DNA from: Eutreptiella sp. 'Long Island Sound 2002'
Taxonomy: Eukaryota; Protista; Euglenida
Direction of reading: 5' to 3'
DNA: 64,000 nucleotides
Assembly (NCBI GenBank): GCA_964036045.1
Contig: OZ038378.1
Span: 11,904,001-11,968,000 of the forward strand
Made by a program: the position numbers and the translations under genes. The notes below the pieces were generated by a model. It saw only the letters and a program-made list of their open reading frames with translations, made no database searches and had not been told where the DNA came from. Every line of letters begins with the position of its first letter. Within the stretch, counting starts at the first letter, position 1. This document shows positions 1 through 57,545 of this stretch, in pieces.

Positions 1-1544
1 GGCGGCGGCGGCGGGGGGGGTGTGTGTGTGAAAAGGGGATGTTCGGCTTCCGGTCTGCACCAGAGACATGCCAACGGCCTGGGGGTAGATGCCGTGCCAT
101 GCACATACGACCGTGTGGACCGAGGGCTTTTCAGGACCACATCCGTGCACACGGTGCACCGGACCGCACCGGGTACAAGGCCTGCCGGACTGCTGACAGC
201 CCCTGACCCCCGCGGGGGCACACGCAGGAGGGAGATGCTGCCATACGGGTGTGTGTCCTGGGAAGGGAGGACCACCTGTACAGGGCTGCGGGGGGGGTGG
301 GCAATGAAGGGGCAGGTTGCTCCAGGGCAGGTAGGGGGGTTGTGTGTTTGCCTGGTGCTCCAGGCCCCAGTGGGGGGGGGGGGGGGGGCAGGGGAGCCTT
401 ACGCTGAGCCCATTGGGGGAGACAGGGGCCCGGGCACACCACCTCCAGGCCACAGGGGCACACTGCAAAGCCACCCCACAACTGCCGTGGGCATGGGGAT
501 GGCTGTGGCACGACGCTCGACTGGGCGGGGCCCGCACTCCTTGACTGCCGCTTGGTAAGGGTGGTGCTGCCGGTTGGCTGGGCCCTCACGCTCACGGCAA
601 AGTGCCTCAGGCAGTTGGAGGGGACCCGGGGCACACGGAGCGCTGCCCTGTCCCGGGACCTCCCCATGGGAGATGCCCGGGATGCGGTGCTACTGCCCAT
701 GTACATGGGGAGGGCCTGAGGGCACACCACCCCCCTGTTGCAAGGGAGGGGGGAGGGTCGCGGAAGGGCAATGCTGCGGTGGGATACGATCTATGATGGA
801 CTACATTGTCTTGAACGTTCACGGGACGTTCACATGTTGGGTTCAGGACATTTTGTCTTTCGTTCATTCGCGCAACCCACCCCAAAGCACTCTCCAATCA
901 TGCACCATTTCAGGCTGGATGCACGGAAGTGTGTTCAGGGGGCACAGCCAGCACGATCCCCGTGCACCCCCCGAACGACCCTGCGGCTGAGGGGCGGAAG
1001 GCATACTTACCGTATTAATTAGGTGCTGAACGCCTTTCAGTGCCAAATGTGTCAAATGCACGAGCCCCGAAGCCCAAGGATTTTGAGGTTGTATTGTGCT
1101 TGGATGACAAAGGATGCCTACAGAGTTGGGGCGCACTAATACCAGGGGGGCCAGTCACGTGGTTGCATGCTTCCGGCCTGTCAGAAGGTTGGATCATGGA
1201 ACACACGAGGATGGATGTGCCTCAACGCTGCATACGCAAGATATGGTCGTTTCCAAGGCGCAGTAGGGGTATGAACAGTGTTGATTTGACACCTGCGCGT
1301 ACGTTTGGCCTCCAGTTGCCGGGTGATGCCTGAAGCCGGGGACTGCGCAGGAACAACAACAAGGGCATGTAGAGGATACAGGAGGCGATGTAGGGGGGAG
1401 GTACGGGGGACGATGTTCGGCCCACAGGGGTGGCCACTTTGTGCCCAAGGAGGGATGCTCCTGCAGATGGTGAGGCAAGTGGATGGCAGGTGTGCTCCGC
1501 AGGCTCGGGACAGTGCGCTCTTGGGGAGGGTATCATTTTCCGAG

Positions 1545-1560
1545 TGCCCTCTTCTCTCAG
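1545..1560 (+). promoter_or_regulatory. Polypyrimidine tract plus AG upstream of the TEP start; candidate trans-splice or 5'UTR acceptor
   Basis: tgccctcttctctcAG ends 14 nt before the ATG at 1575. Confidence 0.45.
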
Positions 1561-1574
1561 ATCCCAGGTCCACA

Positions 1575-2270
1575 ATGTTCCGCAACTGCGGCTGCTCACG
1601 CCCATGGGCAGCCCTGTTGGTTCTGCTGCTTTCGCTCTTGCCGGAGTGTGGGTCCGTCAGCCTCGGCGGTGTGAATTTCCTGTACCCCGCAACCTTCAGC
1701 CCCGGAGAGGATGTCCGCATCATTGCAGACGCCAGCAAGGCCACCACTACTGTGGACACGAGCTCCCTCGGTGCGACAGTGTACAAGGAGACCGCCGTCA
1801 TTTCCCAAAGCACCACGGTGAAGGACTTGGGTGGCCAGCAGTTCGAGATCACACTCCCCATCGCTGTGACAGTGTCGACGGATGCCGCGTATGAAGTGGA
1901 GTTGAGGGTCGGTGCAGCTTCCGACCGCCAGCCCTGCGCCATCAAGTTTAACAACTACGGTCTGCTGCTGGACATCGACAAGTCGTTGTACAAGCCCGGA
2001 CAGTCCGTACTCATGCGTGCGCTGGCGATCGATGCCTCGACGAAACCCGTTACCGGACTGCCATTGACCCTGTACGTGATCCAGCCAGAGCCTGCGAAGT
2101 ACATTGTCTTCAAGGAGACCAAAACTGCCGATGCCTACGGATCCGCCAGCTTCCAGTTTGACCTGCCTCAGGAGGTCATCGAAGGGGAATTCAAGGTGCG
2201 GGTGGAGAGCAACGACGTTGAGGCCCACGGGGCGTTCACTGTTGAGGAATACGTCCTTCCGCTGTTCGAG
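1575..2270 (+). CDS. TEP/A2M exon 1 (signal peptide, N-terminal MG domains)
   Basis: ATG in ccacaATG context; ends EEYVLPLFE at gag|GT. Confidence 0.88.
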
Positions 2271-4973
2271 GTCGCCCTCAAACAGCCCCACACTCTTGCA
2301 CACATCGCGGGCGGGGGGGGGGGGGGTTCGCAAGTTGCGAAATTTCCGAAATTTTGCGATTTTGCTGGTTTCCGAGCATTTGACAAAAGTTTGCAAAATA
2401 ATGCGCTTCTAGCGGTGAGCCCCGCACTCACGTATTGTCACATTGTAGGTTCTTTTTTTTTATGAGTGATCTTCCTCCAGAGGCAGATGCATTCAATGAT
2501 GTTGTTGCTGCTGATGTTGATGATGTCAAATAAAAACAACCCCAAGTTGTACAGTACCCTCCACTTTCCAGTTGCTTACCTGCAGTCTGCGAATGAGCAG
2601 CACAAGTAATGTTGCACAGAGGGAGTTGCTATTGCAAGCAGCCACAACTTTTTCGTTTTGGGATAAGCAAACGGCCATTTTGGCAAAGGCAGCCCAGTTC
2701 TTGGTAAATCTTCCAGTAACATCTGCGGAGGTTGGGTGTTCTCTCCGTCTGCAGACAACAAGTATCGATGCGGCCTCCCTGACAATACCCAGCTTTTCAC
2801 CAACATATCCTCGTGCAACGGGGGTGTGGTGGGTAGGTTTGCAACCCTTTAGTCTGGGTGCTATGACACATTGAACCTCTGTTGCATTGGTGAACCAAAA
2901 AAGTATGATTTGCAGTGCATGTGCCTGACTCACGTTCGGGTTTCAAGGGAATCTGTGTGTTGCAAAGGCTTGGCTCCACGCATCGCGAATGCGTGCAAAA
3001 ATGTGCGTAATTTTTCGAAAAATTGTGACGCAACTTCTCCATACTGCATTTCCGCATTCTCCCTGCCCCCTCTTTCAAACAGCTCCACATTCCCCCTCAA
3101 GCAGCCCCACACTCCCCCACACACAGGTCGGGCTGGTTCCCTCGGCAACGACCATTTTGGAGAACACGAAGGTGCTCGAAGGGAAGGTGACGGCGAAGTA
3201 TACCTACGGGAAGGCCGTGGCGGGTAAGCTCACCCTGCGCTTCATTCAGTCGCGTCAAGGGTACGGCTACGGCGTGACTCAGGACGCAGTCAAGGTTGGG
3301 GCTGGTGTTGTGGATGGAGGCCGAGGAGTGCTGTCGGGTTCGAAGCTCGGGGAGCTGCAGGTAAACCGCGCTTGCAATGCCGTGTTGCAACCTACGGAGC
3401 AAATTAATTCCCACCATCAGCTCCCTGTCTTTGCAGCTATCAGTACCTTCTGCAACCACCTGCCTGTACCAGTCCTGACGTTCCAACCCTCCGCCCTACT
3501 CTCTTCCCTCAGTCGGGTTCCCTGCTTGTGGCATCAATATCCGCTTCATTGATGAGGGGTCCAGTGAGCTTTTGGGGTTTTGTGCTGCATGGGTTGGGGA
3601 TGAAACCTCCCTTTCATGCGAAATTTTGCTGACGCTGGTTGTGACTCAGGCCGCATCAACACATCCAGGGCACGTTGGATGATCTGCAGCTTCAATGCCA
3701 CTCAACCTCAGGGGGTAGAATGTGCGTTTTGTAGGGTTTGGGGAAAGCGAAATCTCGGACACTAGGCGGTGAATTTGGCGTGGAGTGTCTGCATCCCTGG
3801 CACCCCTTTTTGCTTTTTGATTGATGTTGTTAAACTGCTTTTTTCATGGCGGCCACGCTCACAACACCTTCGTTTGATGCAAACTGGAACCGCCAGGAGA
3901 TGGAGTCAAAATATGTGCCGCAAATTGCATGGAATTTCCGACCATGCACACTGAAGGGCCGTCATGGAGCGGGCCGCCACCCGGAGCCATTCCTCTGCAG
4001 ACCCAGTGGTGGTACAAGAAGAGACGTTTGGGGCAGAATAAGGTGGTGGTCAGTCCACTACCAGTTTCCAAAGTTGGGCCATGCGGGGGTCGCGGTCTGT
4101 GGAAAGCTTTGGCATATGCCACAAGAAGTCTTGGAACAGCTGCTCGGTTTGAGATGCTTAACGACAACGTGCTTCTGGTTGTGGGCCAGCTTTGGCACAG
4201 AGCCACAAGCATAACCGCAAAGTGCGGGCCTACACACCCTGTGGGGGATGAAAACTGAGAGGTAGCACCTGAGGGGATGGGGGGGTGCTACATGTGCCGA
4301 GAGATGGTTTCCCCCTCCAGGAGCCCGGCCCTACCTGATTCCCTGGTTCTCCTTGGCGCAATTTTCAAGACAACGTGCTCCTGGCCCCGTCTACCCCCAA
4401 GACTGGCGGGACGTTGAGTCAAGGAAAACCCCTCATCGCCCCTTGCAGGTCTGTCAAAGAGTACCTCCTCTGTATCTTTGTGAGTAACCTAACTAACGGG
4501 TGCTGTGCCTTGGCTACAGACCTGGGAGTGGCAGATTCTATCGGCCTTGAGTTGGGTGCAGATGTCAGTGGCAATCAACTACACACATCTCCATGCAGTA
4601 TTGGCCACCCATAAAGGTGTCGTGGTGCACAGAGAGCATTATGTGTGCGGTATACGCTCTGTCCCATCACCTCTCGTGCACACAAAGTAGCGACGTGAAG
4701 AAGCGCATACGCTGCTGTGGTGTCTCTGCTGTATGGGACGCTGATTGGTGCACTGATAAAGCGATCCCTGCTTTGGCTCAGGCCTGGGGGCTACAGCCCT
4801 TGCCAGTGCCCCAATGTCCATCTCCACACTTCAGCCAGTTCAGCTAGCGGCAGGTAGCAGTTGGTGCCAGCAATCCTTATTTTCACCCTTCGTGGTACTC
4901 CACGGGTGCTCCATCAAGCGGTGGACAAAACAATGACCTGGGTTTGTGATGGTCTCTGACGACCCACACACAC

Positions 4974-5042
<69 letters not shown>

Positions 5043-8000
5043 ACCCCCCTGCCACAGGACGAGCCCCCACCCCACTGCGCCGCCTGGGGGTGCGCAGAGC
5101 CAGCCAGAGGACTCCGGGTCGGGGGGAGGGAGGGCGAACCCCAGCCCCCAAGAGGCGAGTGACGCAAACACCGGTGAGGGGAGGGGGTCATACCCCAAGG
5201 GCGCTTGGCGCTCAGAGCCAGTTCCACCCCTGGCGCGCGGGGACGAAGCGACAGAGGGGAGAGGCACCTCCCCAGGACGGCCCGCCGGGCAAACAAGCAC
5301 GCCGGCTGGAGCGGCATGGGCGTGCAGGCACCGAGGTCTCATAACCCACAGCCACCAGAGGCTCTGGCCTAGGCGAGGGTGACGACTCTCAAGGAGGGCC
5401 AGTGCAGTCATGATGATATCCTCTTGGCACAGGCCCCCCCCCCCGCTGAGCGCCCACCCCTGGACCCATGCAGGCCTTCCTCTATAATATGGCATCCCCC
5501 CCATCCCCCCCACACACACAATGAGAACCACATACCACACAAAACGAAGCAGCAAGTGCGACAAAGCAAGAAAAATCCCCAGGAGCTGCGATACACCCTC
5601 GGACCTCTTTCGTTTTGTGGTGGAGGGGGCAGTGTGTGCAGAGGCCTCATGGGAATGCCAATAAACAGTTCACGGTTCAGCCCTGTGCACCTTTCCAGCC
5701 TCATCACAAAACCCTTCGATCTGCATTGAAGGCTGTGCTGAGTCTGCATCAATGCCTGCAGAAGGAGGTGCATGGTGGTTCAACCCGTGGGTAACGTCCG
5801 CGGTATGTGAAGGACTGGACCCTGCGCATGTGTTGCAGAGTGTGTCCGTGTGTGCGTAGGTGCGTGTGGCCCATCCAGGTGCATTTGCATGAAGTACCAC
5901 ACTCAGGGCTCTGATGTCCTGCATCAATTTTTCTGTTTTTCTATTTTTCTATTTTTCTGTTTGCCTACGTTTTAGAGCCTTAATTTCAGTAGCCACCAAG
6001 GAGGTGTTTGTCAGGCTCGGCGCTGAGGTGGCAACGTGCTAGGTGTGTGTATGTGTGGTGAGTAGCATACCGGGTACAGTGTGTATTTTGTAGGTGTATT
6101 GTATGGGCGATTGGACCCTTGGTGCAGCGGCCCACCCCTTCAACAAGTTGGCGATGTCATGGAGACGTCACACCAAGGTGCTCGCTGATGGAGAGGGGTG
6201 ACTTGGGTGAACCCAGGTGGGCCCAGAGCACCAATTCCTGATTGTGTACTGTGTCAGTTTTGCCTCCTGCAAGCTGCATGTATGTGTTGGTCAGGGCTGA
6301 GCTTTCACCCGTTCTGTTTGTGGGTTGCCTGCTGCTGACTGCATCCCCTGTACTCTAGAGCATCTGTTCTGGAGTGAGAATTGTTCTTTTTTGGCACGTC
6401 TGTTTTGGTAGCAACGAAGTGTATGTGTGTGTGTGTGTGTGGGTGTTTAGGCCGGGTTGCTTGTGAATTGCTCACGATTCGCAGGTCACCTTCGATGGCG
6501 AGTACAATTACCAGTACACGCTCGACACAGTAGTGCAGTCGTATGCCGGACCGATAGTTGTTGAGGCAGTTGTCACGGAGGGTGCAACCGGAACCTCCCA
6601 GCAGGCCACGGCCTCTGTGGAAGTGGCCCAGCGCGACTTCAAAGTGGACCTTACCCCCAATATGAAGCACGTCAAGCCGGGCATCCCGTTGGTGATCCAC
6701 GTGTCGTGTCGCGACAGCAGCGGGGGGCCAGTGTCCAAGAGCCTGCAGATCCGCACGTCGTACAATCTGTGGTCCTGGCGCTATCGCGTGGACGACCATA
6801 TGGCCGACGTCCAATGCGACAGCGCCGGCGAAGCGACGGTGATACTCGACACGTCGGGGAAGGAGAACGCGACGTGCTGCAACGTCTCCAGCTCCGATAA
6901 GTCGCAGTCATGCTGCCTGCGCTCCGTCATGTCGTACGCCTTAGACGCCGGCACGAAGCACCGCCTCTGGGACACACAAATGTGCGTCGGCCGCGCGCAC
7001 TCCCCGAGCGATTCGTTCATACATCTGACGGCGTCCGGCGGCTCAGACACGACACATGCTCCGGGGAGCCAGGCCGCGTTTGAGTTGCAGTGGACGGACG
7101 CGGCGGTGACTGCGCAGGTGTGCAATTGTGCGAACCTTTTCATGGAATTATGTGACAGCATCTGTGCTCCACATCATTTTCACGAACATTGCTCACTTCA
7201 ATTCGAGTGGCCCTTGTTGTGGTAGTTGCGTTGGTCGTCGTTGCCGTCGTCGTTGTCATTCTGTTCCTCAGGGCCAGGAATGTCCCGATGCCGGAACTCA
7301 GCGGAAACACCATTTGCCGAATTTTCCCTGGTTTGGGTCACCCACATATTTTCCCACCAGCATCTTCCCCCATTTCCCCATTCCCCCCCGTTTTTCCTAC
7401 TTCCCCATTTTCCAGCGGGAACTTGAGCAGGGGCTTGGCTGTCAGGTTGAGCGGGAAATTCTTGGCCCTGGTTCCTCGTCATGGTCGTGGTCGTCGTGGT
7501 CGTGGTCGTGGTCGTGGCCGCTGTCATAGTTCTTGTGTTTGTCGTTTTACTTGTCGTCGATCTACACACTTCGTCCCGAGTATCTGGTCTGGTGCCGGGA
7601 ACAGCCAACTTCGCACATTTTCCGCGCGCCATCAAAGTGTCTGCCACTTGTCTTGCAGTCAGGCATCAGCTGACTCCCCTCCTCCCCCTTCAACGCCCCC
7701 CCCTGTGTGACATTCCGTCTGGTTGTTGCTCCTTTACGGGGCCCTGGACGGTCACCCGTTCTTCCCTTCGCATGTTGCGTCGGGTCGCTGCTTTCTGTCG
7801 GCCGCTGCGGCCGGTGCTCCTGCTGATGTCGTTTCCGCGTTCGCGGAGCCCAGTAGTTGGCGTGTTGGGACTGTGCTGAATGTGGCATGGTGTGCCCCCC
7901 CCCCCCCCCCTCTGGGGGGAGGGAGGGAGGGGGGCTACCAGTGCGGTGTCCATTCCCACAGGACATCCGCATCATCATTGCGGCGTCCTCCCGCATCGTC

Positions 8001-11000
8001 GCGTGGCAAGACATCGCGGCGAAGACCTTCCAAGTCACCCTCACGGCCTCCATGGCCCCGCGGGCCCATGTGGTGGCGTACTACACCCGCAGCGACGGGG
8101 AGGTCGTCGCGAGCGCCACCGCAATCGCGGTGGCGTTCCCCGCCACCAACGCCCTCACCGCCGCCTTCAACACCTCCTCCGCCGCCGTGGCCGCGGACGT
8201 CACCCTCGCGCTGCGGGCCGCGGCGCACTCCCGCGTGTTCTTGTTGGCCGCCGACCGCAGCACGAGCCTCCTCGGCGACGCGACGCGCATCAACGCCGCG
8301 GCCCTCGCGGACGCCTTTGCCGCCCCCGAGGCGGCGTCGGGGCTGTCCGCGTGCGCCGACGGGGTCTTCAAGGAGGCGGGGCTCTTGGCCATGTTTCCGG
8401 ACGCGCCTCCGTGCCCCAGGCCCCCGTCGTCCGCCTGCTCCGGGTACGGGGGCGGCGAGGTAGTCATGATGGAGGGGGCCATGGACGACGGCGACGTCGC
8501 AAAGGTCACTCCTCCGTCGCTCAGCACGTCTGCCGGTCCGCGTTCCAATGTCGTCTGTCGTGCGTCCCCGTCCCAGGGGAGCAGTGGTGGTGTTGTCTCT
8601 GCGACATCAGCTCCCGGTCCGTGACGTCACCGTCCTCGGGACCCATTTTCCCTGGTTTTGTTTTCAGTTGTAGGCGGTCGTGCCGTGGCCGACGGAGGTC
8701 GGGGTTAACGGCGCTTAAAAGGCTCTGCAGCTCCGTGTTGCGGGCTGATGGCTGACCAACGGCGGCGTTGTGGAAGGCACTGCGCCTGAGTTGGTGCGTT
8801 TGTGTTCGAGTTGCTCCGGACAGCCCCGCCTTTTGGATCCGTTTGGGTGCGGGTTCAAGTGCGGCAGCGTTCGCTGCACCACCACTTCAACACGACACAG
8901 CCACACCCCGACTGCGTTTTGTCAGTCCATTTCATGTGGGGTCACAACATCTCGGCGTCCCGGCGGTCGTGTGCTGTCCTCTGCCGTGCCCTCTGCGCTC
9001 CTGCCGCCGTCCCGCCCATTCCGTTGCCCGCTTCATTCCCCTGCCCCCTCTTCTGCGGTCCTCCTCTCGCCTCCGTGATCTCGACAGGCGGATATGGCCT
9101 TTGGCAGCGCCGCCGGGACCACCGGCTCGTCCACATCGACCGGCTCCTCCGGAGCGCGCCCCCCCGAGGCCGCCCTGGCCTCCGTCAAGCGGACACGAAC
9201 CTTCTTCCCGGAGACGTGGCTGTGGCGCGAGGTGCCCCTCGGGGCGGCGGCCGCGGCGGCCCTGCAGCTCACGACCGCCGACACGATCACGACGTGGGAC
9301 GTCATGGCCTTCGCACAGAGCCCCGGCGACGGCCTCGGATTCGCCGAGACGTCCCTCCGGGTCTTCAAGAGCTTCTTCGTGCGGCTCGCGCTGCCCGCGT
9401 CGGCGCTGCGCACGGAGGGCGTCGCTGCGGTCGCGACCGTCTACAACTACGAGCCGGGGGAGGTCACCGTTCGGCTGGAGCTGACGCTGCCCGCGGGGCT
9501 GAACGTCACCGGGGACCGCGTGCGCACCGTGACCGTTCCCGGCAACAGCGCCCAGTCCACCACGTACATGCTGGGCTGCAACGCCGTGGGGCTGCATCCG
9601 CTGCGGCTGACAGGGCAGACGCTCGCCTCTGTCGGGCTCGCCGACGCGGTGCAGCGCATGCTGCGCGTGCGGCCCGAGGGCATCGAGCGCGTGCTCAGCT
9701 ACAGCAAGCTGATGGACGTGACTGCGGGCGCGCCGGCCAGTCTATCCATTCCGCTCCAGCTGCCGAAGGACACCGTGGCCGACTCCGCACACGCGACGGT
9801 CTCCATTACCGGCGACCTCATGGGCGCCCCGCTGTCGGGGCTCGAGGGCCTGTTGCGGCAGCCGTTCGGGTGTGGCGAGCAGACGATGATCACACTCGCA
9901 CCGAATGTGTACGCCCTGCGCTACACCTCCGCGACCGGCACTGCGACGGCGGAATTCACGGAGCGCGCGACCCGCAACATCCGGTCCGGCTACGTCCGCG
10001 AGCTGCGGTACCGCCACGGCGACGGGTCCTTCAGCGCGTTTGGGGAACGCGACGACTCCGGCAGCTCGTGGCTGACCGCATTCGTCCTGAAGGTGTTCGC
10101 AGAGGCCAGCGAGTTCGCCTTCATCGACCCCGCGGTGTTGACCGCCGCCGCGGGGTTTCTCGCGGACACGCAGAAGAGCGGGGGCGCGTTCCCGAAGGTC
10201 GGGACGGTGTGCCACGACGAAATGATGGGGGGTGCCGCCGGGGCCGATGGCGAGAGGGCCATGACGGCGTTCGTGGGCATCGCCCTCACCGAGGCCTTGG
10301 ACGTGCTACCGGCGGGGGCCCAGAAGGACCGCGTGCGCACGGCGGTGCAGAGCGCCGCGTCGTACCTCGTCAAGGGGCCCACGGGGCCGCTGCAGGCGGG
10401 CCCGGCGGTCTACACCGCCTGCGTCAGGGCGTACGCGCTGCAGCTGATGGCCAAGCGCGGCCTCGCCACGCCCGCGGAGGCGGCGGCGGCGCTGGACGTG
10501 GTGAAGGCGGCGGCGACCGACGATGGCGGCCTCGCGAACTGGAACACGGACGCGGCCGCGGGCGGCAGCGCCAAAGCGCGCGCGACGCCCGAGTGCCTGG
10601 GCTGCGGGGGGCACTGGCGACGCCCGATGTCCACGAGCATCGAGGCCACGGCGTATGCGACGCTTGCGCTGGTGCAGGCGGGCGACATGGGCCTGGCCTA
10701 CTCCGCGGCAAAGTGGCTTGTGTCGCAGCAGAGCGAGACCGGGGCCTTCCGCTCCACGCAAGACACGATCGTGGGCCTCCAGGCGCTGGCCGAGTACGGC
10801 GCCGCGATCGCCGCGGCGAAGCCGACGGTGGCCGTCGTGATAGAGGACGGTGCGGGCACGACGCAGCAAGTGCAGGTGGATGCAGGGACCTGGAACGTGC
10901 TCCAGACCCGCGAGGTGGCCCCCACGGGCACTGTGGCGGTATCCGCCACGGGCACCGGCAAAGTGATCGCCCTGACGACGCTCAAGTACAACGTCCCGCG

Positions 11001-12290
11001 CGACCCGGAGCCCCCCATCTTCAATCTGACCACCGGCTGTGTGTTTGAGGGTGCGGACAGGAGCCGCGCGCGCTGCCGCTTCTGCACATCCCTGGCCCCG
11101 GGGCAGGGGTCGCTCACGGGGCAAGTCATGATGGAGCTCGGCCTTTTCACGGGCTACGCTTTCGACACGGCTTCCATCTCAAGTCTCCTGGCGAACACGC
11201 GGCTCAAGCGCATCGATCAGGACCAAGGCAAGACTCAGGTGTGTCCGTGATTCCCGCCCCTGCAGACGCACACCCGTCGCCTCTCTGCAGACCAGTGGGC
11301 ATCCCGGATGAACGGGGTCAGGCAGCGGTCGCTGGCACTCAGATGGCCGTGCCCATGGACCGTTTGTGTCCACTGGTGTGCCATACCTCAGCCGGGGAGG
11401 TCGCTTGTGGAGGGATAGTGGGAGAGAGAGAGTGACAGAAGTGCTGGTTGGGCATAGAACCGGTCAGCAGCTGCATGCTCTTGCACGAGTTGACGTCAGG
11501 CCATCACGCCCAGCTGGACCTGCCTGGAGTGCTCATTCAATGGGCGTGCACCACAGATCACTTTGTGTATCGCACCCTCTTTCCTACCGGATCACATCCA
11601 ATGCGTCCAGCCCAGGTACAACCCGCATCGTCGACGTCACACGCTACTCCGCCATGTGCGTCATCGCGCAGGACGCTTGACCAAAAGATACCGAGATCGA
11701 GCCCCAAGTGGTCGGTAGCACTCAGGTGCCGAGGCGCTAGGTGTCCTTGCTGACCCCAGTGCACGGTGGTTCGCTCGCGCCTTGACATTGCCCGAGTGTT
11801 CTACCTCCATCTCTCCCCCCGCCCCCCTCTGTATGTGAAGTGGTGGCACGAGTCATCGCTGGAGTGGTAAGCCCTTTGCTGTGCACGGGCTGGTCACGCA
11901 CATAATCGGTGGTGGTGGTCGTGGCCGTGGTGGTGGTGGTATTGCCGTTGTTGTTGTTGTCGTTTGGCTCAGGTGTACGTCGACTACCTCAAAGGCGGCG
12001 AGGAGCTCTGCATCGTCTATGACATCATTCAGCAGCTGGTCACGCAGAACCTGCAGCCGGTGCCCCATCTTGTGTACGAATACTACAGCCCCGACCGCAA
12101 GGGCGCGGCCATGGGACACGTGGCCGATACGTACGAGGGCGCGGGGCTGGCCAAGGCCCTAGGGGAACCCGGCGCTCACGTTGGCCCTGTGGGAGGTGGC
12201 TGGGGGTTGACGGGCTCGGCATCGGGCGCAGCCCCGTGCGGGTGGCTGCTGGGGCTCGTGTGCATGGCGTGTCTACTGCAGTTGCGTTGA
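1575..12290 (+). CDS. Alpha-2-macroglobulin/CD109/TEP-family thioester-containing protein; join(1575..2270,3127..3294,6485..7117,7962..8504,9088..11238,11973..12290), 1502 aa
   Basis: Six GC-rich exons join in frame across five GT-AG introns (4509 nt including stop). Signal-peptide-like N-terminus (WAALLVLLLSLL). Family motifs: DKSLYKPGQSV, EEYVLPLFEV, AKYTYGKAV, RTFFPETWLW, thioester GCGEQ (9868-9882), DGSFSAFG, SWLTAFVLK, STQDTIVGLQALAEY, VYEYYSP. Hydrophobic C-terminal tail. Confidence 0.93.
3127..3294 (+). CDS. TEP/A2M exon 2
   Basis: cacacAG|gtc acceptor; KYTYGKAVAGKLTLRF; donor aag|GT. An alternative in-phase donor exists at 3360/3361. Confidence 0.8.
4976..5039. repeat. (AC)n microsatellite in TEP intron 2
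   Basis: Uninterrupted AC run of about 64 nt. Confidence 0.97.
6485..7117 (+). CDS. TEP/A2M exon 3
   Basis: tcgcAG|gtc acceptor; EAVVTEGATG, HVKPGIPL, SPSDSFIHL; donor cag|GT. Confidence 0.85.
7269..7470. mobile_element. MITE in TEP intron 3
   Basis: 13-bp TIR CAGGGCCARGAAT (1 mismatch); flanking direct repeat GTTCCT at 7263-7268 and 7471-7476. Confidence 0.65.
7481..7517. repeat. (GTCGTG)n simple repeat
   Basis: Visible hexamer run. Confidence 0.85.
7962..8504 (+). CDS. TEP/A2M exon 4
   Basis: cccacAG|gac acceptor; MAPRAHVVAYY, DGEVVAS, LLAADRS; donor aag|GT. Confidence 0.85.
9088..11238 (+). CDS. TEP/A2M exon 5 (bait-region end, thioester domain)
   Basis: cgacAG|gcg acceptor; FPETW, GCGEQ, VCHDEMMGG; donor cag|GT. 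Confidence 0.93.
11973..12290 (+). CDS. TEP/A2M exon 6 (end of receptor-binding domain plus GPI-signal-like tail)
   Basis: gctcAG|gtg acceptor; VYVDYL..C, QNLQP, VYEYYSP; ends GWLLGLVCMACLLQLR-stop. Confidence 0.88.
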   Translation: MYVDYLKGGEELCIVYDIIQQLVTQNLQPVPHLVYEYYSPDRKGAAMGHVADTYEGAGLAKALGEPGAHVGPVGGGWGLTGSASGAAPCGWLLGLVCMACLLQLR

Positions 12291-20033: not shown

Positions 20034-22070
20034 ATGGACTTGGATCTCATCAACGATATGGAAGAGGTTGTTGAACAACAATTTGGTTCTCACGTTGAGC
20101 ATTTATCAAACAAAAAACCAAGTGTTAAGAAGGTTATCTCGCACTTTGAGGCCATGAGTGATTCCGGCGAGACTTCAAGCGCTAATTCTATGGGTCGTCG
20201 AAAACAAATTGCCACCAAGTCTTCCGCCGGCTCTAAAGATGCACCAAAGTTGAGGAGCTCCTCAAAATCCCCATCGGATTCATTTTCGGACTTTTTGCAT
20301 CAAATTGGTCCCAATGTATTGTCGACAAGTAATTCACCACGTGACAAGGTGAAAATTGTGAAACGGCGACGACGTGAGAGTCGAGGACCGACAACCTTCA
20401 CGCCCATTGAACAAGCCGTGCAAGTTGTGCTTAAACAAGACCTCGATGATTGCAAACATCGCACGGAACAAGTTGAATTTCGACTAGCCCGCCTTGAAGA
20501 GAACGTGACCAAGGGTGGCGACAAAATTGAGTCGTCCGGAAATGCTTTTGAAGACAATGTGAGACGAGTTGTCACACATGAAATGCAAGGAGACCTCATG
20601 AGAGACATGGTGAGGAATGCCCTTGATGATGAACGACGCCAACGTGAGTGTGATGAATTTGATGAGACGTTGTCCTCACGGTTGAATCAACAACATAGCA
20701 AGCAGGCGGACGACAAATTGTGGGATAACATTCGTCGTTTGCTTTCCAAAGAATTGTTGCATGACGGTGATATCGTGGGACAGCTAAGGGGCATCATTCA
20801 AGCCGAACAACTTCATGGGTTGGATGAGATAGCCATCATAGACAAGGTGAAGAACATTGCTCGTGAGGAACATGCAAATGGGTTACAACGAGGTGTTGTG
20901 GACACCCATATTCGGTGTCTCGTGTCTCAATCACTTGCCCAAGGAGCCGGTGCTTCGACACGTGATCAACATGGAATTGACCACTTAACCATATTGGAAC
21001 AAGTGAAGCGCATTGTCCGTGAGGAAAATGCGCTGTTGATCAAACAACAATCTTTTGGTGAACGAATTATGTGCCTCACTTCAACCATGGCGTCACGACT
21101 GGACGCACTTGAAAATGAGATGTTGAGGCGCACGGAGCTTGATGCACGACTTTCAGCCATTGATGCATCATTGATCGCGCGGAATAATGAGTTGGTGCCA
21201 CTTAGTGCCAAAATGTCTACACTTGATGCACAAATTCGTTCCATGAGTCTTCCGGGTGGGGGACAGCATATGCATGAGTCCAAAATGACTGTGGTTGAGT
21301 CTTCCTTGAACTCCCAGCTTGAGAGTGTGAGAAAACAATTGGAGACACACACCATAGACTTCCAAGCCTTGAGCCAAATGGTCAAGGAGAAAATACCTAA
21401 ACATGTTTCTCAAGATGAGTTTCAAAGAACACTCACATCTACCAATACAACATTGGAGGCACTTCAACCTAAATTTCGCATACATGATCAATTACCACAA
21501 TCTTTGGATCTCTTGGAAACCAAATGTCGTGCTACTGAGGTCCAGGTGTCCCAATTACAGAGCCACCTTGCATCTAGTGGTGAGTTGGCTACGACGGTTG
21601 AGCGGTTGCAATCACGGGTGAAGAGGTTAGAAGCAGCACCATTGGCCGGAGTTTCTGGTCCGCCTTTGCCTTCTTCAATTGATAATATTCCAGCGGGTGT
21701 TTTGCCTCGCTTAGATGAGATCGAAGGACAAATGAATGCGTTGCAGAAGCATACTGACGGGTCACTTTTCAACATTCGGGAAGAAATTCGAAAAGAACAT
21801 GCCCTTTTGGCGAATCAAATTCATGAGGTTCCAGGCAGGTATGTTTCTTCCAGCATGTATGCTTCATTGGTGTCCGACATGGACCAATTCAAGGGTGAAG
21901 TGATACGAAAAAAAGAACATGAAGTGCTACAAGGCACTCTTGCATCCTTGAGGGCTGACCTTGCGGGTGGTGTGGTGCCTGCTTCTGATTTTAAGAAGTT
22001 ACAGCTTGAGGTAACAAGGATTGTCGATGATGTTGTACAAAAAGGTGTGTTCCAACAGTATCAACATTAG
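20034..22070 (+). CDS. 678-aa coiled-coil ORF at the 5' end of the Gypsy element (extra ORF or gag N-terminal extension)
   Basis: Long open frame rich in L/E/Q/K helical heptads; ends at a single TAG that is in frame with the next ORF. Confidence 0.75.
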   Translation: MDLDLINDMEEVVEQQFGSHVEHLSNKKPSVKKVISHFEAMSDSGETSSANSMGRRKQIATKSSAGSKDAPKLRSSSKSPSDSFSDFLHQIGPNVLSTSNSPRDKVKIVKRRRRESRGPTTFTPIEQAVQVVLKQDLDDCKHRTEQVEFRLARLEENVTKGGDKIESSGNAFEDNVRRVVTHEMQGDLMRDMVRNALDDERRQRECDEFDETLSSRLNQQHSKQADDKLWDNIRRLLSKELLHDGDIVGQLRGIIQAEQLHGLDEIAIIDKVKNIAREEHANGLQRGVVDTHIRCLVSQSLAQGAGASTRDQHGIDHLTILEQVKRIVREENALLIKQQSFGERIMCLTSTMASRLDALENEMLRRTELDARLSAIDASLIARNNELVPLSAKMSTLDAQIRSMSLPGGGQHMHESKMTVVESSLNSQLESVRKQLETHTIDFQALSQMVKEKIPKHVSQDEFQRTLTSTNTTLEALQPKFRIHDQLPQSLDLLETKCRATEVQVSQLQSHLASSGELATTVERLQSRVKRLEAAPLAGVSGPPLPSSIDNIPAGVLPRLDEIEGQMNALQKHTDGSLFNIREEIRKEHALLANQIHEVPGRYVSSSMYASLVSDMDQFKGEVIRKKEHEVLQGTLASLRADLAGGVVPASDFKKLQLEVTRIVDDVVQKGVFQQYQH

Positions 22071-25000
22071 GTTCAAGCAACACTGGCCTCTTGTGTGACT
22101 GAATCCCGGTTGGTAGAATGGGGCTCTTCATTCCAACACACAATGGAGACAGCCTTGGTGTCTAAGTTACAACCAGCACACGCTGGGGAGCCAGGTAGCA
22201 GTGAGCCTACCGGTCAGGTTATTCAAGCGCAGGTACAACAGGCCACCAAGGCTGCATTTGAGGCACAAGCCAATGCGGCGGCATCCAAGGTTGATGTAGA
22301 ACAAGCCATTCACTCTAGCACGGAGGCACAGGCCAGTGCAACTCACGCTGGCCGCATTTATAAGCAGGTCATGGAGGTCCAAACTCACGTGGATGAGGCC
22401 AGGGAGGCAGTGGTGCTCAGTGAAGAGCAAGCACGGGAGCACGCACGTAGTGCTTCATCTGCCTCTGCCACTGCAGCACAGGTGTTGTCCACAGCACGTG
22501 AGGTAGAAGGAAGTGTGGTGCAACATGCCCACAATGCCATACAGTCTGCCAAGGCTGCAGCCAATGACGCCTGCACTGCATCCCAGTTAGTAACACAGGT
22601 GCAGGAGCAGTGCGAGGGTCTGAGCCAGCAAGTGGAGGCCCTTTGTGGTGGTGAGTCAGATAGTGACATGCCCCCACTGGTGAGTAGTGCAGAGGACAGT
22701 GATGATGATCAGCGCCCTAATTCACAGCAGGGTCCCGCTGGTCAGGCCTTGAAGCGCCGCTTGCGCAAGTGGCTGCAGTCAACTGCAGTGGTTGCCACTG
22801 AAGCTAATACTCAGGCTACGGCAGCGAGCCAGTTGGCTAGTGAGGCAGCTACTAAGGCACAGGAGGCACATAATAGGGCGGAACAAGGGGCTGCTACGGC
22901 TCAAGCGGCCCTGAACTGTGCCAAAGATGCCCATGGCCACATCCATGACATGGGCCAGCGGTTGTCCGATATGTCACAGGACCTTCAATCAACGAAGGAT
23001 CAGTCAGACAGGGCGTCGCAACAGTGCGCACGGGTATGTGATAGGGTGGACAAGCTGCCTGGAGATTTGGAAGTGGTGGAAGTGGCCATGTCTTTCGGTT
23101 CACCCAAGACTACTTCCTGCCCACCCACAGTCCATGATCCCTATTCTGCGCCCCTAACAGATGTTAACCACTCCACACCCTCATCTGAGGCACATGGGCC
23201 TGGCAGTTTGATGGGTCGTGGTACGATGCCCACTGGACAACCTTCAAGCTCCATACCTGCAACGTTGAGTGGGGTGCCTCTGGGTGGTACAGTGCCCCCC
23301 CTGAACAATTCCCTGGGCCTGGCTGGTGCAGGGCGACAACAAGTGCAGCAGCTGCAGGGCATGAATCCACTCAACAGTGGTGTACAGCCCGGTTGCCCCT
23401 CTGGTCCCTCCCAGCCAAGTTCGCAATTTTTTCAGGGCACACCGCAATCAGTTCCTCCCAATCCTACATCTCCTTCCTTATTCTCTTCGCAATTGTATGC
23501 TCAGCACACCCACCCTCACGTTTCTCCAACTCCATCTGTGCCTCCCATCCCCCCACACTTGTTGAGTACTAAACCTCCTGTTGGGTCCACTCAGGGCTTC
23601 CAAACGCTTCACGGACGAACACCGTGGGAGCCGTTGCCGCTGAGCGGGGCAATGCAGCCCCTTATAGAGCCAGTGCCACACCAGGGTGCTGCCAAGATGT
23701 CGGGCACAGCGTTGGGCTATGGTCATACTCCTATCGTGAGTGTTGGACAGCCCCAAGGTATCTTTTCTCAGACCTACAACCCTGACTGCCCGGAGTATGG
23801 CACACGCATGACGCTCTGGGATCGGGGTTTGGACTCCCCCGACCAAGCGCACATGTCGCATCAGGCATGGGGTCAGATCTCGTGGGCTTTCGACTCAGAT
23901 GGGGTTTTCAATGCGGATAAGGCGCTTTACCCCCCCCCTGATGTGCGGGATGTGCGGCCAACAGGAATTGTGGCTGGGTTTGCTTTTCTGGAAGTACGCC
24001 CCCCCGAAAAACTCTTGGAAATGATCCGCAGCGGATCTGTCACTCTTGGGGGCACAGGTAAAACTGATGGACATCTGTTTAGGAGGGACGGCCACCCCAT
24101 TCTGGACCCCAAGATGCAATCACGGGTTCAGGACATGTCGCAGGCACCTTCCTTCCGCCAAGGCGATGACTGGGACCGTTTTGAGTTCCTCGTGGTTGAT
24201 TGGTTTCAGGTTAAGGGTAGGTATCTTCCTGAGGATGAACAGGTGAAGGCATTGATAGCCACACATCCACAGGAAGATGACGTACGTTGGCTGGAGTTGG
24301 CACGCAGCCAACGCTTGGGTTTTTTTTCAATTATTACGCCACATGGCCCATGATGGCCGCCGGGGGGCGGACCAGAGTCGCGCCCTGTCTGAGTTTGAAG
24401 CCATGGTGTTACCCACCACAGCTCTTAACCCTTGTTCATTGGCCAGATGGTTTGCTGAGTGGCTCAAGAAGGGAAGGAAGGTCCTTGGTGGTTACACCAC
24501 TCATATGGCACAGGAGAGGCTAATGAGGATTTTCCATCAACATGCCAAACTGGAGGTCACTCCAGGTTTTAAGCAGGCAGTGTCCAAGGTTCTCCTCAGA
24601 CAGACCCAGGCCCGCCTCAGGTTCACATACATTGAGCTTTATTTGTTCATTATGCCCTTCCTGATGACTGAGGAAGAGACAGGCTGGGATGAGGAGCACT
24701 ATAGCGGCTCTACCCACCTCCGGGCCTTCTCTCAGTCTCCAGGACGTTCCTACAGCCGGTCTGGCCGGGATCCTGAGCGCACTTCTGTGCGGAGAGTTGA
24801 CAAACCCAGGGACAGATCCAGGGACAGGGGCCGTGAGAGATCCCGGGAGAGAGCGGCAGGTGAATCTGGTCAGCGATATGATGGACGGTCATTCCCTTTC
24901 AGGGGTGACGGCAGATCTACAGACCAGAAACGCCCTGGGAGCCGTGATGGCGATCGCCGGCGTTCATTGACACCGGGGCGAAACCCTGAACCCCCATCGC

Positions 25001-25380
25001 GCAGAAGCGTGTCCCCGGGGCGACCAAGGGAACCTGAGCGTCCGCTGCAACCTCAGGATGAGAACAATGTGAGGGGTCGCAGCCGGGAGCGGTCAGAGTC
25101 CAGACCGCGCACGCAGTCACGCTCCCGTGTTTGTTTTGAATGCGGGGGCGACCACATGAAGGCTGACTGCCCTAAACTAAAAGCCGATGTGGGCAGACGC
25201 ACCCGCAGTAAGGACAGAGCGCAAACTGAGGGATGTTTTGAGTGTGGAGGGCCACACATGAAGGCGGATTGCCCTAAACTGAAGGCTCAGGGTAACCGTC
25301 GGTCGGCCAGCCGAGATCGACGCGGGAATTCACCCCACCCTGGGCGCCGCGGGCGGTCCGCTGAGAGAAAACAAGGTTAG
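22071..25380 (+). CDS. gag: Gag (Ala/Gln-rich, Pro-rich, capsid-like, RS-rich, 2x CCHC); frameshift at the T8 run near 24320
   Basis: CFECGGDHMKADC and CFECGGPHMKADC zinc knuckles; ORFs 22095-24353 and 24277-25380 overlap at a homopolymer. Confidence 0.82.
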
Positions 25381-28300
25381 GGCACCACCAGGGGATCCCG
25401 GCTGGCATACCAGAAGCGTCCCAAGGGGCAATCTAAACAACTCTTTCGACGCTTTGCCAGTCGACTGCAAACCCCCAGTTCCCTGATGGTATTGCCTGTC
25501 GCGCCCGGTCACAGGCAGGTGTCGGCGGGGTCGTGGGCGACAAAATGCCCCCTTCAGTGGGCCGAGGCGACCCGAGCTCTTTTGCACTTTTCAGATAACA
25601 TGGTTTGTGAAGTCCGGGCGCCACAAAAATTCAAAAATCGACGCCAACCCCCCAAAGAATTGGTGGTCCCTGTTCGCATGTCTCTTGAGGGCGGTGGGCA
25701 GGGGCTCCCAACAGAATGGGAGGCCCTCATTGACAGTGGGGCTCAACCTTTAGGGGCCGTTGGACGGGAGTTGGTCCCCCCTGAATGTGCTGTGTCTTCC
25801 CCATTCCCTGTTACTGTGACGGGGGCAGACCAGTCCGTCATCAAAGGTGGCGGGCAGGGGGTTTGGATGAACCTCTCAGTCCCTGTTTGGGGTAAGTATG
25901 GGTCAAAGATCTTTCAGTTTGTGCATATATTTGTGTACATCCTGGACATTGGGCCCAAGTTTATCCTTGGGTACCCATTTTTGGAGCAATTTCAGCTTGC
26001 TATTATCCCAGGCATTCCGCTGTTGGTGCCTGTGGAGTCTATTCGGCTGAGAGCATGGGGCAAATACATTGCTGGTCCCCATCAGCCTTGTCCCAAGTGC
26101 CATTGGTGTGTAGAGGGACAGGGATGTCCTGCCCATTGCCAGGAATGTAGGTTTTTGACAGTGTGCCGTATACACACACAAGTGACAGGACCTACAGCTC
26201 AGGGCCTTTCCCCCCCCGAGAAATACGTTGGGACAGGATGTCCGCCCCATATTGATTCATGGTAAGAGACATCATTGCTCTATTGGGGTGGAGTCCTGTG
26301 GGTCCAGGGTGCAGGGGGTGCGGCGTAGGGTGCGTTGGGGTGGCACAGCGCGTTATGCTTATTCCCTTCTTCCTCAATTTCAGGATGGCTCAAGCTCAGA
26401 GAGCGACGAGGATGATGAGGTGCCTCAGCGATTAAAACGTCCTTCTCAGGTTTTTTCTGTTGCTTGCCCTTCCCCACCACCATCCCCTCCTTCCTCCCCT
26501 CATTGTATGGTGAAAGATGTACATACATCAATGAATTGGACCACTGCTGCTGCATGTGGGCTGCAGAGGTTTGATGCGGCGGAAGAACGCCATGTGGCTG
26601 GCCGGTGCGGGGTGCATGACCCTTATTCATTTGGCCAGGGGGTTACATTTGATATGTTATTAGAGGCCAAGACGGCCATGACTGTTATGGTGACCCCCGA
26701 GCCACAGCAGCGCATCAGAATTCAATGCCGGCCGGCGCAATGGGCTGATGGTGTGCCAGATAGGCAGCCTGCGCTTGGAGGCCAGCAGCACCAACAACAA
26801 GGGTGGACGGCTGTACCAAGGGCTCTGCGAACCACCGCATCGGTGAGACAGCCGGTGGTGCATGCGAGCCTTGAAGCGCCCACATTTGGTCACACCAATT
26901 ATTGGGCGCCATTACAGGGCAAGCGGGACAGTGGGGTTGCAGAAGGGCGGGTTGAGGCGACAGCGCTACCCCTGCCCCGTAAGGACCCCCCCCCCTCCCA
27001 CATGTTCTGCAGGGAACGTCAGCCCCACACCCACTCCCTTAAGGGTGGAGGTGGCTCAGATACAGCCATCTTCAGCTCCTGCTTGTTATTGCAGTGATTC
27101 TGCAATTTGTCACCTTTGTTTTGCTGAGGACACACCCCTCCCTGGCACTCTAAATATCCTTTCGACAGTGGTTCAGCCTGAGCGGGCTGTACCCCCCCTC
27201 CATCCCTGCTCCTACCCCCCTTTGCCATATGTATCATCGGTAAAGGCTACAGCGTCCCCAGAGAACACGGGTCCTACCCCAGTTGGGTCAGGGGATCTGA
27301 GAATCTGGAAACGGGACGCCATTAAGGAGGTTTATTTGCTCCGTATTGAGGAGCGACGAGCATGGGACGCCATGGTGGCGTCATTTCAACATATACTGAC
27401 ACCTCGCGATGCTCTGAGGGGTGCTCAGATGATCATCAGGGAGGAGCAGCAGGCTATTAGTGGACTGCTGGACTCCTTCCAGCGTATCCTTCCCTCCCTC
27501 CCCCCCCCCTCTCAAGATGTTGAAATTGATTATGTGCATTTATGGCGTCGCTGGCGCCAGATTGAAGCTGATATGACCAAATATTGGCAGCGGAGTGCTG
27601 CCAAGGTGAAGGAATTATATTGGACATCGGGACTACAGTGCTTACAAGGGGTTCTGACGCCTCACATTGCTCCCTCGGTCCAGATTCCATTTGTATACAT
27701 ATTGTATCGGGGTTTTGTAGAGTTCATGGTGAGTCGTGTGTTGATGTTATTCATACTGCTGGGAGCATTGACAGGGTCTACCCTGCGCTCTTTGAGACTA
27801 AGGGAGTTGTCCATGGTCTCAGACCCCCCCAATGAGAGCCTCAATATGAGGATGATTCCGTTCCAGAAGTCGCGCCCTTGTGGGCTAGCGCCGAAAACCT
27901 GTTCTGGGTTGTTCGATAGGTTCAGCAGTGCGGCAGAAAGCATGCTGAATCAGGAGCTGGGTCTGTGGTGCTCTGGCGTGCCTGCAGACCCTGTTGTTTT
28001 TTCTGTTGCTGCGTCTAGGTCTTGCAAGGCCACTGACATTGATTCCCGGAACCCAGATGGATGGGACAACTTGTCCGAGGGTGGTTCTGAGGTGTGCTCC
28101 TCAGATGCTGACACTGATAGTGACACTGGACATACATCAGTGTTACGTCAGCATGCCCCCGCGTATGCACCAGACTATTTCATGGGAGGATGGGGATACT
28201 CGCGTGAGGAACAGCAGAAGTTTTTTTCTGCGCCCCCCCCTGTTGAGCATATCTCAACATGTAGTCTGTCATCCATCCGTTTGGAGGATTCCACTCCGGT

Positions 28301-50186: not shown

Positions 50187-50189
50187 AAA

Positions 50190-56079: not shown

Positions 56080-57545
56080 TCAGTCCCTAGCTTTAGTCTT
56101 GGAGGCAAGCGTCTCAGCGAGCCTCAGCAACTCACCAAGGTTGTTCTGGGACAAGTAGTCCACCAGAACTGAGTTTAGGCGTCCCTCAGGTAGAACAAAT
56201 GCAGAGAAGGGCTCCCAGGTGGCCTCTTCGACTCCAAACCCTTCCCAGAGGGTGAGGAAGCGCCAACCTTGGCGAAAGCGGTGGCGTAGGAAAGACTTCA
56301 CCAGGTAGAAGCCCTCCTTAGCCATCTCCTCGGCGTTCATGTCGGGAAGTTCACCTTCAACTTCCATAGGGCTGGCAGCCCCTTGTAGGTCCAGAGCGGC
56401 GATTTCCTCGTCGTTCAGCTCCCACTCCTCCCCACAGAGGTCTTCAGGATCATAGTAGCGCTTCAGGTGTTGAGCAGCGCACACCAGGGTCCCCCCTAGA
56501 CGGGGAGAGCACCGCACGGTGATACGGTGTCCATCCACTGATAGAATCTTGTACGGCCCGAAGTATGGGTCATTGCTGGTAGAGCGTGGCCAGGCGGGTA
56601 GTCGACTGTGGTGCACCAGCACCCAGTCCCCCTCTTGGTAGGTGGCCGGTACTCGGTGCTTGTTCTTCTTGTTCCACTGTCGCTCCCTCACTCTCTGGAG
56701 CATAGCCTTGGCCTTGTCCACCTTCGCTTGTTGCTCTTGGACCCATTCACCCACAGAAGAATGGGTGTCCTCTGGATAGGGGGCATGTAGGAACCATGCC
56801 GGGCGCCCTAGGAATAGCTCATGGGGCGAGTAGCCAGTAGCTGAACTCTCTTGGGAGTTCATCATCAAGAATATGACGGGGAGTAGTCTCACCCAGTCTC
56901 TGGTGCGTTCAGTTTTGCACCATATCCTGACGTTCTCCTTCAGGACACGGATCTGTCGCTCACATAGGGGGTTGCTCGTGTGAGAGTAGGGAAATCCCGT
57001 AGACACCTGGACATTGAGGGATCTCAGGACCCTCTTGTACCAGCCAGTATCTGAGCGTACTCGTACGTCCTCATCGGAGTTGATCTCCTTGGGCGCCCCA
57101 TAGACACAAAACCACTCCTCCAGGAGTATCTTGATAGTCTCCTCCCCGGTAATGTGTTTGGTACATGGGAACACCCTGGTAAACCTGATCAACCCACAGG
57201 TTTCCACGAGGGCGAAGTCATAGCCCCCGAACTTCGGCATCTCCGTGTAGTCCACGTATAGAACACTGTTAGCACAGTGAGGGATGGGCAGGGTCGAGTA
57301 GAGACCTCTGTCCCTGATATCCCCTGGTTTACAGGACCTGCACGGGCACTTGTCCACGATAGGCTGGAGGGTTTTCCGCAGTTGGTCGTCAGTCCACGTA
57401 GTGTGGAACCACTGCTTGAACAGCCTCAGGGTGCGGTCAACACCCACATGACCACTGGACTCATGGGTCCACTTCAGCAGCGCTGGGACTCGGTCACTAG
57501 GCACCACAATACGGTCCTCGTGCCATAGGTAGCTCTTGTCGTCAC
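56080..57545 (-). mobile_element. 5'-truncated Ty3/Gypsy integrase plus chromodomain, second family
   Basis: THESSGH..CPCRSC, LYVDY, INSDED, NPLCE, YFGPYKIL, LVKSFLRHR..FLTLWEGFGVEEATWEP; open frame to the stop at 56080. Confidence 0.9.

Follow-up and report, generated by a model that had tools for sequence, protein, structure and literature searches.

A predicted CD109-like thioester protein of the A2M family encoded in the nuclear genome of the euglenid Eutreptiella sp.

The A2M/TEP/complement family is regarded as having arisen in animals, with offshoots in bacteria, and the presence of such a gene in a free-living euglenid alga raises the question of what its product could do there and where it came from. 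The locus lies at positions 1575-12290, on the forward strand, of a 64,000-nucleotide stretch (the whole of the DNA analyzed, hereafter the window) from Eutreptiella sp. 'Long Island Sound 2002' (assembly GCA_964036045.1, contig OZ038378.1, positions 11,904,001 to 11,968,000). Judged from its sequence, the gene probably encodes a 1509-amino acid (aa) thioester protein of the secretory pathway that has the layout of CD109, belongs to a protist/algal branch of the A2M family, and would act as a covalent trap at the cell surface. The gene itself is an intact nuclear gene of the euglenid host, and mismatch-free spliced contigs from the RNA run X2, which fix introns 1 and 2, confirm that it is transcribed and spliced.

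Reading of the sequence together with a scripted frame check gave a model of six coding exons and five introns, the latter all GT..AG and all in phase 0. The G+C content at third codon positions (GC3) reaches 0.69-0.91 in the long open stretches of 1575-12290 (+), and the DNA between them is lower in GC and filled with stop codons. The original prediction, made from the letters of the window, had placed both ends of the gene exactly (start ATG at 1575, stop TGA at 12288-12290) and had correctly described few introns, here five, and GC-rich exons, with GC3 of up to 0.9. Its length of 1502 aa had to be revised, as the six exons sum to 232+78+211+166+717+105 = 1509 aa; the difference lies in the boundaries of introns 1 and 2, fixed by RNA at 2271-3126 and 3361-6484. 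All searches were performed exon by exon rather than with the joined 1509-aa model, and in BLASTP the exons tile five full-length homologues colinearly. The features of the gene, all on the + strand, are as follows.

1559-1574 (+): candidate spliced-leader acceptor (AG at 1559-1560 after a pyrimidine tract) and 14-nt 5′ untranslated region, from sequence reading
1575-2270 (+): exon 1, 232 aa, signal peptide, MG1 and MG2, ending ...EEYVLPLFE (Pfam MG2, alignment, RNA contigs)
2271-3126 (+): intron 1, GT..AG, phase 0, with a G15 run and a possible structural variant, and with a direct repeat close to each of its ends (RNA contig)
3127-3360 (+): exon 2, 78 aa, start of MG3, with AKYTYGK (Pfam MG3, RNA contig 3125-3270)
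3361-6484 (+): intron 2, GT..AG, phase 0, with very high-copy host repeats and (CA)n (X2 joint)
6485-7117 (+): exon 3, 211 aa, end of MG3, MG4 and start of MG5 (Pfam MG4, RNA contigs, BLASTP)
7118-7961 (+): intron 3, GT..AG, phase 0, predicted from splice sites and frames only
7962-8459 (+): exon 4, 166 aa, MG5/MG6 (A2M_BRD) and first half of the bait-like linker (Pfam A2M_BRD, colinear BLASTP)
8460-9087 (+): intron 4, GT..AG, phase 0, predicted from splice sites and frames only
9088-11238 (+): exon 5, 717 aa, remainder of the linker, MG7 (FPETW), CUB, TED, CUB and first half of MG8 (Pfam, PDB matches)
9868-9882 (+): thioester motif GCGEQ, aligning with the thioester of A2M, A2ML1 and CD109
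10213-10215 (+): putative catalytic His, 114 residues past the thioester Cys; at the aligned position CD109 and A2ML1 have His, whereas A2M has Asn
11239-11972 (+): intron 5, GT..AG, phase 0, predicted from splice sites and frames only
11973-12290 (+): exon 6, 105 aa and stop, second half of MG8 (A2M_recep), GSASGAAPCG stretch and hydrophobic tail (Pfam, translation)

Public sequencing runs were aligned to positions 1400-7399 only. Within this segment, X2 contigs cover exon 1 at 1560-1853 and 2114-2268 with 0 mismatches and exon 3 at 6481-6644 and 6741-7089, also mismatch-free. One X2 contig splices 2114-2268 to 3125-3270, a junction that is ambiguous by 2 nt and whose GT-AG reading is 2271-3126, and a joint from 3356 to 6481, scored as 'GT..AG (cut +4)', sets the exon boundary at 3360|6485. 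The check by RNA that the original prediction had proposed for splicing was thus passed for introns 1 and 2. The contigs also ruled out other models of the 5′ half of the gene, namely, an intron 1 at 2334-3126 with poly-Gly coded by the G15 run and an early intron 2 donor at 3294|3295, the used donor being 3360|3361. Likewise, an intron 1 of the non-conventional kind, bounded by the direct repeat CTCAARCAGCCCCACACTC, was rejected upon finding a plain GT-AG junction in the RNA contig. Runs X5-X8, whose small size would have suited RNA, behave as DNA, with contigs that pass through the introns, and evidence of expression therefore comes from X2 alone.

At the 5′ end, an X2 contig begins at 1560 with 6 further letters that do not align to the genome, which makes the AG at 1559-1560 a candidate spliced-leader acceptor. 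These data are compatible with addition of a putative leader 14 nt before the ATG, as the original prediction had proposed in naming candidate trans-splice acceptors; the leader itself was not seen, and the spliced leader of Euglena, with 3 mismatches allowed, had no match in the 64-kb window, so that this search lent no independent support to the identity of the host.

Both confirmed introns contain repeated sequence. The 19-20 nt direct repeat CTCAARCAGCCCCACACTC stands at 2277-2296 and 3098-3117, within intron 1 and a few bases from either end, and is not complementary, so it does not represent the end-pairing of non-conventional euglenid introns. The G15 run occupies 2312-2326, and some contigs in both DNA runs swap 2327-2560 for 34 other letters, with many contigs ending at 2326, which suggests either that a structural variant or haplotype is present or that sequencing broke off at the homopolymer. 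The high-copy repeats and (CA)n of intron 2 are also seen in X1 and X2, the runs of RNA type, in which there are many different internal joints around 5379->5463.

The encoded protein carries the A2M family domains in order. Pfam matched MG2 (7.9e-14) on exon 1, MG3 (6.3e-08) on exon 2, MG4 (6.4e-05, just under the Pfam cut-off) on exon 3, A2M_BRD (6.6e-14) on exon 4, A2M (MG7; 1.2e-22) and the full TED_complement profile 1-312 (6.2e-82) on exon 5, and A2M_recep (4e-07) on exon 6, the first half of MG8 being encoded at the end of exon 5. Successive family domains match successive open stretches, and this set is far beyond chance. MG1 and MG2 of exon 1 were moreover colinear with 17 homologues in the alignment. 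A typical signal peptide opens exon 1 and leads directly into MG1, with no plastid-type extension at the N-terminus of the exon 1 protein, and a bait-like linker of ~60-70 residues, rich in Gly, Ser, Ala and Pro and split by intron 4, separates MG6 from MG7. The features that define membership in the A2M family are all present: an MG chain with a bait or linker in MG6, a TED with CGEQ, and a C-terminal MG8. Pfam and translation thereby bear out the earlier description of an intact, complete gene with signal peptide, MG domains, bait-like linker, GCGEQ, receptor-binding domain and hydrophobic tail. All the motifs that it listed were found as well, namely, KYTYGK, FPETW, STQDT and EEYVLPLFE|V, the last of these interrupted by intron 1.

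In layout the protein follows CD109, also as predicted, both in its domain order and in what it lacks: Pfam found no anaphylatoxin (ANATO) or NTR/C345C domain in any exon, and only 105 aa follow the CUB/TED block. The hallmarks of complement C3, C4 and C5 (anaphylatoxin, beta-alpha processing site and C345C) are not those of this protein, the domains being absent by Pfam. The putative catalytic His in the TED completes the CD109-like architecture; in C3 and C4B, a His at this position lets the thioester react with hydroxyl groups. The C-terminus reads ...GSASGAAPCG-WLLGLVCMACLLQL-R, with a terminal hydrophobic tail WLLGLVCMACLLQLR at 12243-12287 (hydropathy 2.07). This order of small residues, short spacer and terminal hydrophobic stretch resembles the pattern of a glycosylphosphatidylinositol (GPI) attachment signal, and the protein may accordingly carry a GPI anchor.

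Among solved structures, exon 5 matched human A2M best (2.6e-89), followed by A2ML1 (1.7e-82), CD109 (2.1e-79), C4, C3 and TEP1. Human A2M and A2ML1 (PDB 7von, 6tav and 7q1y) share with the euglenid protein the logic of bait region, TED and MG8; A2M, in contrast, has Asn in place of the His, is soluble and tetrameric, lacks a membrane tail and falls in another clade. Animal CD109 (GPI-anchored; PDB 8s3o and 9fx2) has the same domain order and, like the euglenid protein, no ANA/C345C, and each carries GCGEQ and, in the TED, a His at the catalytic position, as well as a signal peptide and, at the C-terminus, a hydrophobic tail of the GPI type. The two differ in sequence (~35% identity), in that the euglenid protein branches outside animals and choanoflagellate and has a GPI anchor that is putative, and in the RRRR furin site, which was not seen by eye in euglenid exon 5. 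Classical bacterial A2M (E. coli ECAM/YfhM, Salmonella A2M) shares the general idea of a thioester trap only: there was no bacterial A2M among the 54 PDB matches (E<=1e-3) and no match of the thioester protein to NCBIfam prokaryotic models, and the euglenid protein is not of this type.

An exhaustive HMMER search with exon 5 returned 7778 relatives, none above ~45% identity apart from the locus's own open reading frame (ORF), and a word search agreed. The best identities were to protists (40-45%), with animals at ~35-38%. Homologues were found in prasinophytes (Cymbomonas, Pyramimonas and Micromonas commoda, the last annotated as 'alpha-2 macroglobulin family-like protein'), dinoflagellates (Symbiodinium natans, Symbiodinium CCMP2592, annotated as 'CD109', Effrenium, Polarella and Gymnodinium smaydae), the rhizarian Euglypha, the choanoflagellate Salpingoeca urceolata, many animals and Tara Oceans eukaryotic transcripts, along with a large set in Chloroflexota/Dehalococcoidia, including a complete Dehalogenimonas genome, and a few archaeal metagenome-assembled genomes (MAGs). 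Homologues are widespread and annotated in dinoflagellates and prasinophytes, and in the literature searched we found none described in the host lineage, so that the refutation named in the original prediction applies by half. The protist/algal proteins (Micromonas commoda, Cymbomonas CYMTET_51942, Pyramimonas MMETSP1169, Symbiodinium 'CD109', Polarella and Gymnodinium smaydae) resemble the euglenid protein in architecture and GCGEQ at 37-41% identity, and a signal peptide and terminal hydrophobic tail are common to most full-length members of their clade. The euglenid protein differs from them in coming from another supergroup (Discoba), on a long, deepest branch, with <=45% identity to any partner. 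No functional study of these protist/algal proteins was found in the literature searched. The Chloroflexota/Dehalococcoidia and archaeal-MAG proteins (e.g., Dehalogenimonas sp. 4OHTPN) have a domain set like that of eukaryotes and share TED_complement, A2M_recep, FPETW, GCGEQ and TQDT with the euglenid protein; they differ in forming a separate, well-supported clade and in being ~1380 aa long, ending right after MG8 without a tail, and bearing a lipoprotein-like signal.

Individual relatives deserve mention. The nearest environmental one, P0160, is flanked by a gene for VPS13 and by one for a kinase, the latter with faint EF-hand matches, and its host is therefore a compact-genome eukaryote; relative P0182 has bacterial neighbor genes. 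P0264, P0198, P0211 and ~100 more form a large and uniform Dehalococcoidia/Chloroflexota clade of ~1380-aa proteins with a eukaryote-like A2M architecture (TED_complement and A2M_recep) and a lipoprotein-like signal, which is distinct from classical bacterial A2M. P0295, a 1605-aa protein of Salpingoeca urceolata (EukProt) that includes a TIL domain, is placed as the sister of animals, and P0162 (Euglypha rotunda, a rhizarian) branches with the Chloroflexota/archaeal clade; both placements bear on the age of the A2M family.

Trees were built on the exon 5 region (~680 columns) with FastTree (272 rows), a quick IQ-TREE run (78 rows) and a careful IQ-TREE run (44 rows, LG+C20 PMSF); all are unrooted and contain no classical bacterial A2M outgroup. 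All trees agreed on three groups, namely, animals with the choanoflagellate as sister, Chloroflexota and archaeal MAGs with Euglypha, and a protist/algal clade, to which the proteins of the named algae belong in every tree. In the careful tree, the euglenid sequence lies within this last clade, among prasinophytes, dinoflagellates and marine eukaryotes, as its deepest branch, and is split from animals and prokaryotes with support of 100/92. Animals group with the choanoflagellate in a clade that excludes it (92/85). The euglenid sequence does not branch inside the animal CD109 clade, and orthology by descent to animal CD109 is unsupported by the trees.

These results bear on the original prediction that the motifs are of the animal CD109/insect-TEP type rather than the bacterial type. 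FPETW, GCGEQ and TQDT occur in the animal, Chloroflexota/archaeal-MAG and protist groups, and some protist homologues likewise contain EYVLPxFEV and YTYGK; none of these motifs is therefore diagnostic of the animal type. The prediction was right in setting the protein apart from classical bacterial A2M and in placing it, as the phylogeny now does, in a host outside animals; its animal affiliation was overstated, as the tree puts the protein in the protist/algal clade rather than with animal CD109/TEP. On its sequence, the euglenid protein is neither of the classical bacterial type nor specifically animal.

In the A2M family, as described for A2ML1 and A2M, cleavage of the bait triggers exposure of the thioester (PMC9156758). 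By analogy with these proteins, we propose a mechanism in which the thioester protein would be displayed at the cell surface while the thioester is kept buried. The exposed linker could then be cut by a protease, whether of bacterial, parasite or grazer origin, upon which the cleaved molecule would rearrange and briefly expose the thioester. Assisted by the His, the thioester would then acylate a nearby hydroxyl or amine and tie the protein covalently to the protease or to a foreign surface. The outcome would be either neutralization of the protease at the surface or tagging of the intruder.

Several points weigh against this reading. The hydrophobic tail of ~14 residues is short for a GPI signal, and the thioester bond, the GPI anchor and the cleavage of the bait are all inferred from the sequence. 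Introns 3-5 are predictions, backed by the splice consensus, by their phase and by the colinear tiling of homologues, and the RNA support consists of contigs, not reads, from one estuary metatranscriptome (X2). As for the phylogeny, the euglenid branch is long (1.2-1.4 substitutions per site) with its sister not settled, and the approximately unbiased (AU) test rejected a clade of the query with animals only marginally (p=0.044, log-likelihood difference [delta lnL] of 7.0).

The alternative that survives best keeps the same chemistry and changes the location: the protein could be a soluble broad-range protease inhibitor, an A2M-like cage or trap, or be held by a C-terminal transmembrane anchor instead of acting as a GPI-anchored surface tagger. 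The best PDB E-values are indeed to the protease inhibitors A2M and A2ML1, the Gly/Ser/Pro linker, long and unstructured, is reminiscent of a bait region, and the shortness of the tail would fit as well. However, the catalytic His is of the CD109/A2ML1/C3 kind, unlike the Asn of A2M, and the C-terminus follows the GPI-signal pattern, with small residues ahead of a hydrophobic stretch that ends one residue before the C-terminus, a pattern that recurs across the protist clade and in a CD109-like animal protein. We therefore regard a soluble or transmembrane protein as rather unlikely, and a surface covalent trap as the better account of these features.

A second alternative concerns origin only and would leave the mechanism as proposed. 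The gene could have come by endosymbiotic transfer from the green-algal, Pyramimonadales-like plastid donor of euglenids, as the homologues of Cymbomonas and Pyramimonas are among the nearest rows by path and E-value. A clade of the query with Pyramimonadales passes the AU test, both in the 78-row quick tree (p=0.58, lnL +5.5) and in the careful one (p=0.148). In the latter, however, the constrained topology is 13.9 lnL units worse, the maximum-likelihood position is basal to the whole protist clade, and no support value favors a sister pairing with Pyramimonadales. Such an origin is neither supported nor rejected by these data, and we consider it unlikely.

Very unlikely, in our view, is a recent horizontal transfer of an animal-type gene from a metazoan into the euglenid, a reading near to that of the original prediction and to the one published for Mamiellales. 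A metazoan origin has been proposed for the green-algal copies (PMC9156758), the top PDB matches are animal A2M, A2ML1 and CD109, EEYVLPxFEV and KYTYGK are most like animal sequences, and the AU rejection of the query with animals is marginal. Nevertheless, the PDB holds no protist member and its ranking is biased, the identities are highest to protists, the animal and choanoflagellate clade excludes the euglenid sequence, and no unconstrained tree put the sequence inside or beside animals. Five introns, host repeats and an identity of at most ~38% to any animal further indicate that any transfer was not recent. A position within the protist/algal branch remains our preferred placement.

The integration of the gene into the host genome was supported by DNA runs X5 and X8, which cover the exons, introns and upstream flank within 1400-7399 without mismatch at an even depth of 20-40, with a depth of thousands at 4800-5600 and 6000-6400 in intron 2. 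Given this depth in the same DNA runs, the intron 2 repeats are the host's own high-copy repeats, and together with a DNA depth equal to that of the flanks they show that the locus is not contamination. Contamination or mis-assembly from another organism is extremely improbable: it would fit the lack of any homologue above 45% identity elsewhere, euglenid transcriptomes of the searched collections included, but the gene is on a 1.3-Mb contig (the one from which the exon 5 ORF is on record), two DNA samples cover the locus within 1400-7399 mismatch-free at equal depth, its intron 2 repeats occur thousands of times in the same runs, and the rest of the window is retroelement-rich, like other stretches of the host genome. 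A non-animal host, as originally suspected, is upheld by the five introns, GC3 of up to 0.9, host repeats in an intron and branching with protists.

Homologues outside animals have been noted before. MEROPS family I39 was listed in Micromonas in 2014 (PMC4189545), three prasinophyte copies (Micromonas, Pycnococcus and Bathycoccus) were accepted as real and attributed to metazoan transfer in 2022 (PMC9156758), and both papers mention the Mamiellales homologues briefly; the latter places the origin of the family within animals, after the divergence of sponges (PMC9156758). Searches on TEPs in protists or choanoflagellates, CD109 in Symbiodinium and A2M in Chloroflexi returned nothing relevant beyond these two, and no paper on an A2M/CD109-type gene in Euglena or other euglenids was found in the literature searched. 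What is new here is an A2M family gene in a lineage for which we found no prior description; the family and its database-annotated protist homologues are known, and the surprise is for this reason moderate only. The wider protist and Chloroflexota picture is visible in databases, and as far as we searched it has not been written up.

Similar genes in other algae show that the family extends beyond animals and bacteria. The euglenid locus adds a genome-anchored, intron-containing and transcribed copy within a well-populated protist clade. Tentatively, and as a possibility that we hold as doubtful, thioester proteins of the complement/A2M family may be far older than animals, having been present early in eukaryotes or having spread widely among protists as a GPI-anchored defense by covalent surface tagging or protease trapping. 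If this were so, the euglenid copy would represent Discoba for the first time and branch off deepest in the protist clade, the choanoflagellate copy beside animals and the rhizarian copy beside the prokaryotic clade would fit early presence or wide protist spread, and the published origin within animals after sponges would be contradicted (PMC9156758). The locus makes it testable whether immunity by covalent tagging preceded animals and what role such a protein has on the surface of a free-living alga, e.g., in defense against bacterial or parasite proteases, or in recognition of prey or partners in mixotrophs.

The remainder of the window consists of Ty3/gypsy and long interspersed nuclear element (LINE) sequence, and Rfam and tRNA scans of the 64 kb found nothing. 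A long retroelement at 20034-32948 (+) holds two large ORFs, of 678 and 752 aa, that are coiled-coil/Gln-rich; its other ORFs comprise one that is gag-like and has two CCHC knuckles, one that resembles a protease, and a pol of 2028 aa that combines reverse transcriptase (RT), RNase H, integrase and a chromodomain-like C-terminal end. A LINE-type element at 45399-51994 (-) carries ORFs for endonuclease/RT and, apart from these, a 326-aa ORF for RNase H. Finally, a 707-aa ORF at 56080-58203 (-) joins a GC-rich N-terminal part resembling an S-adenosylmethionine (SAM) methyltransferase to an integrase core and a chromodomain-like tail, and may represent a captured domain or a chimeric read-through.

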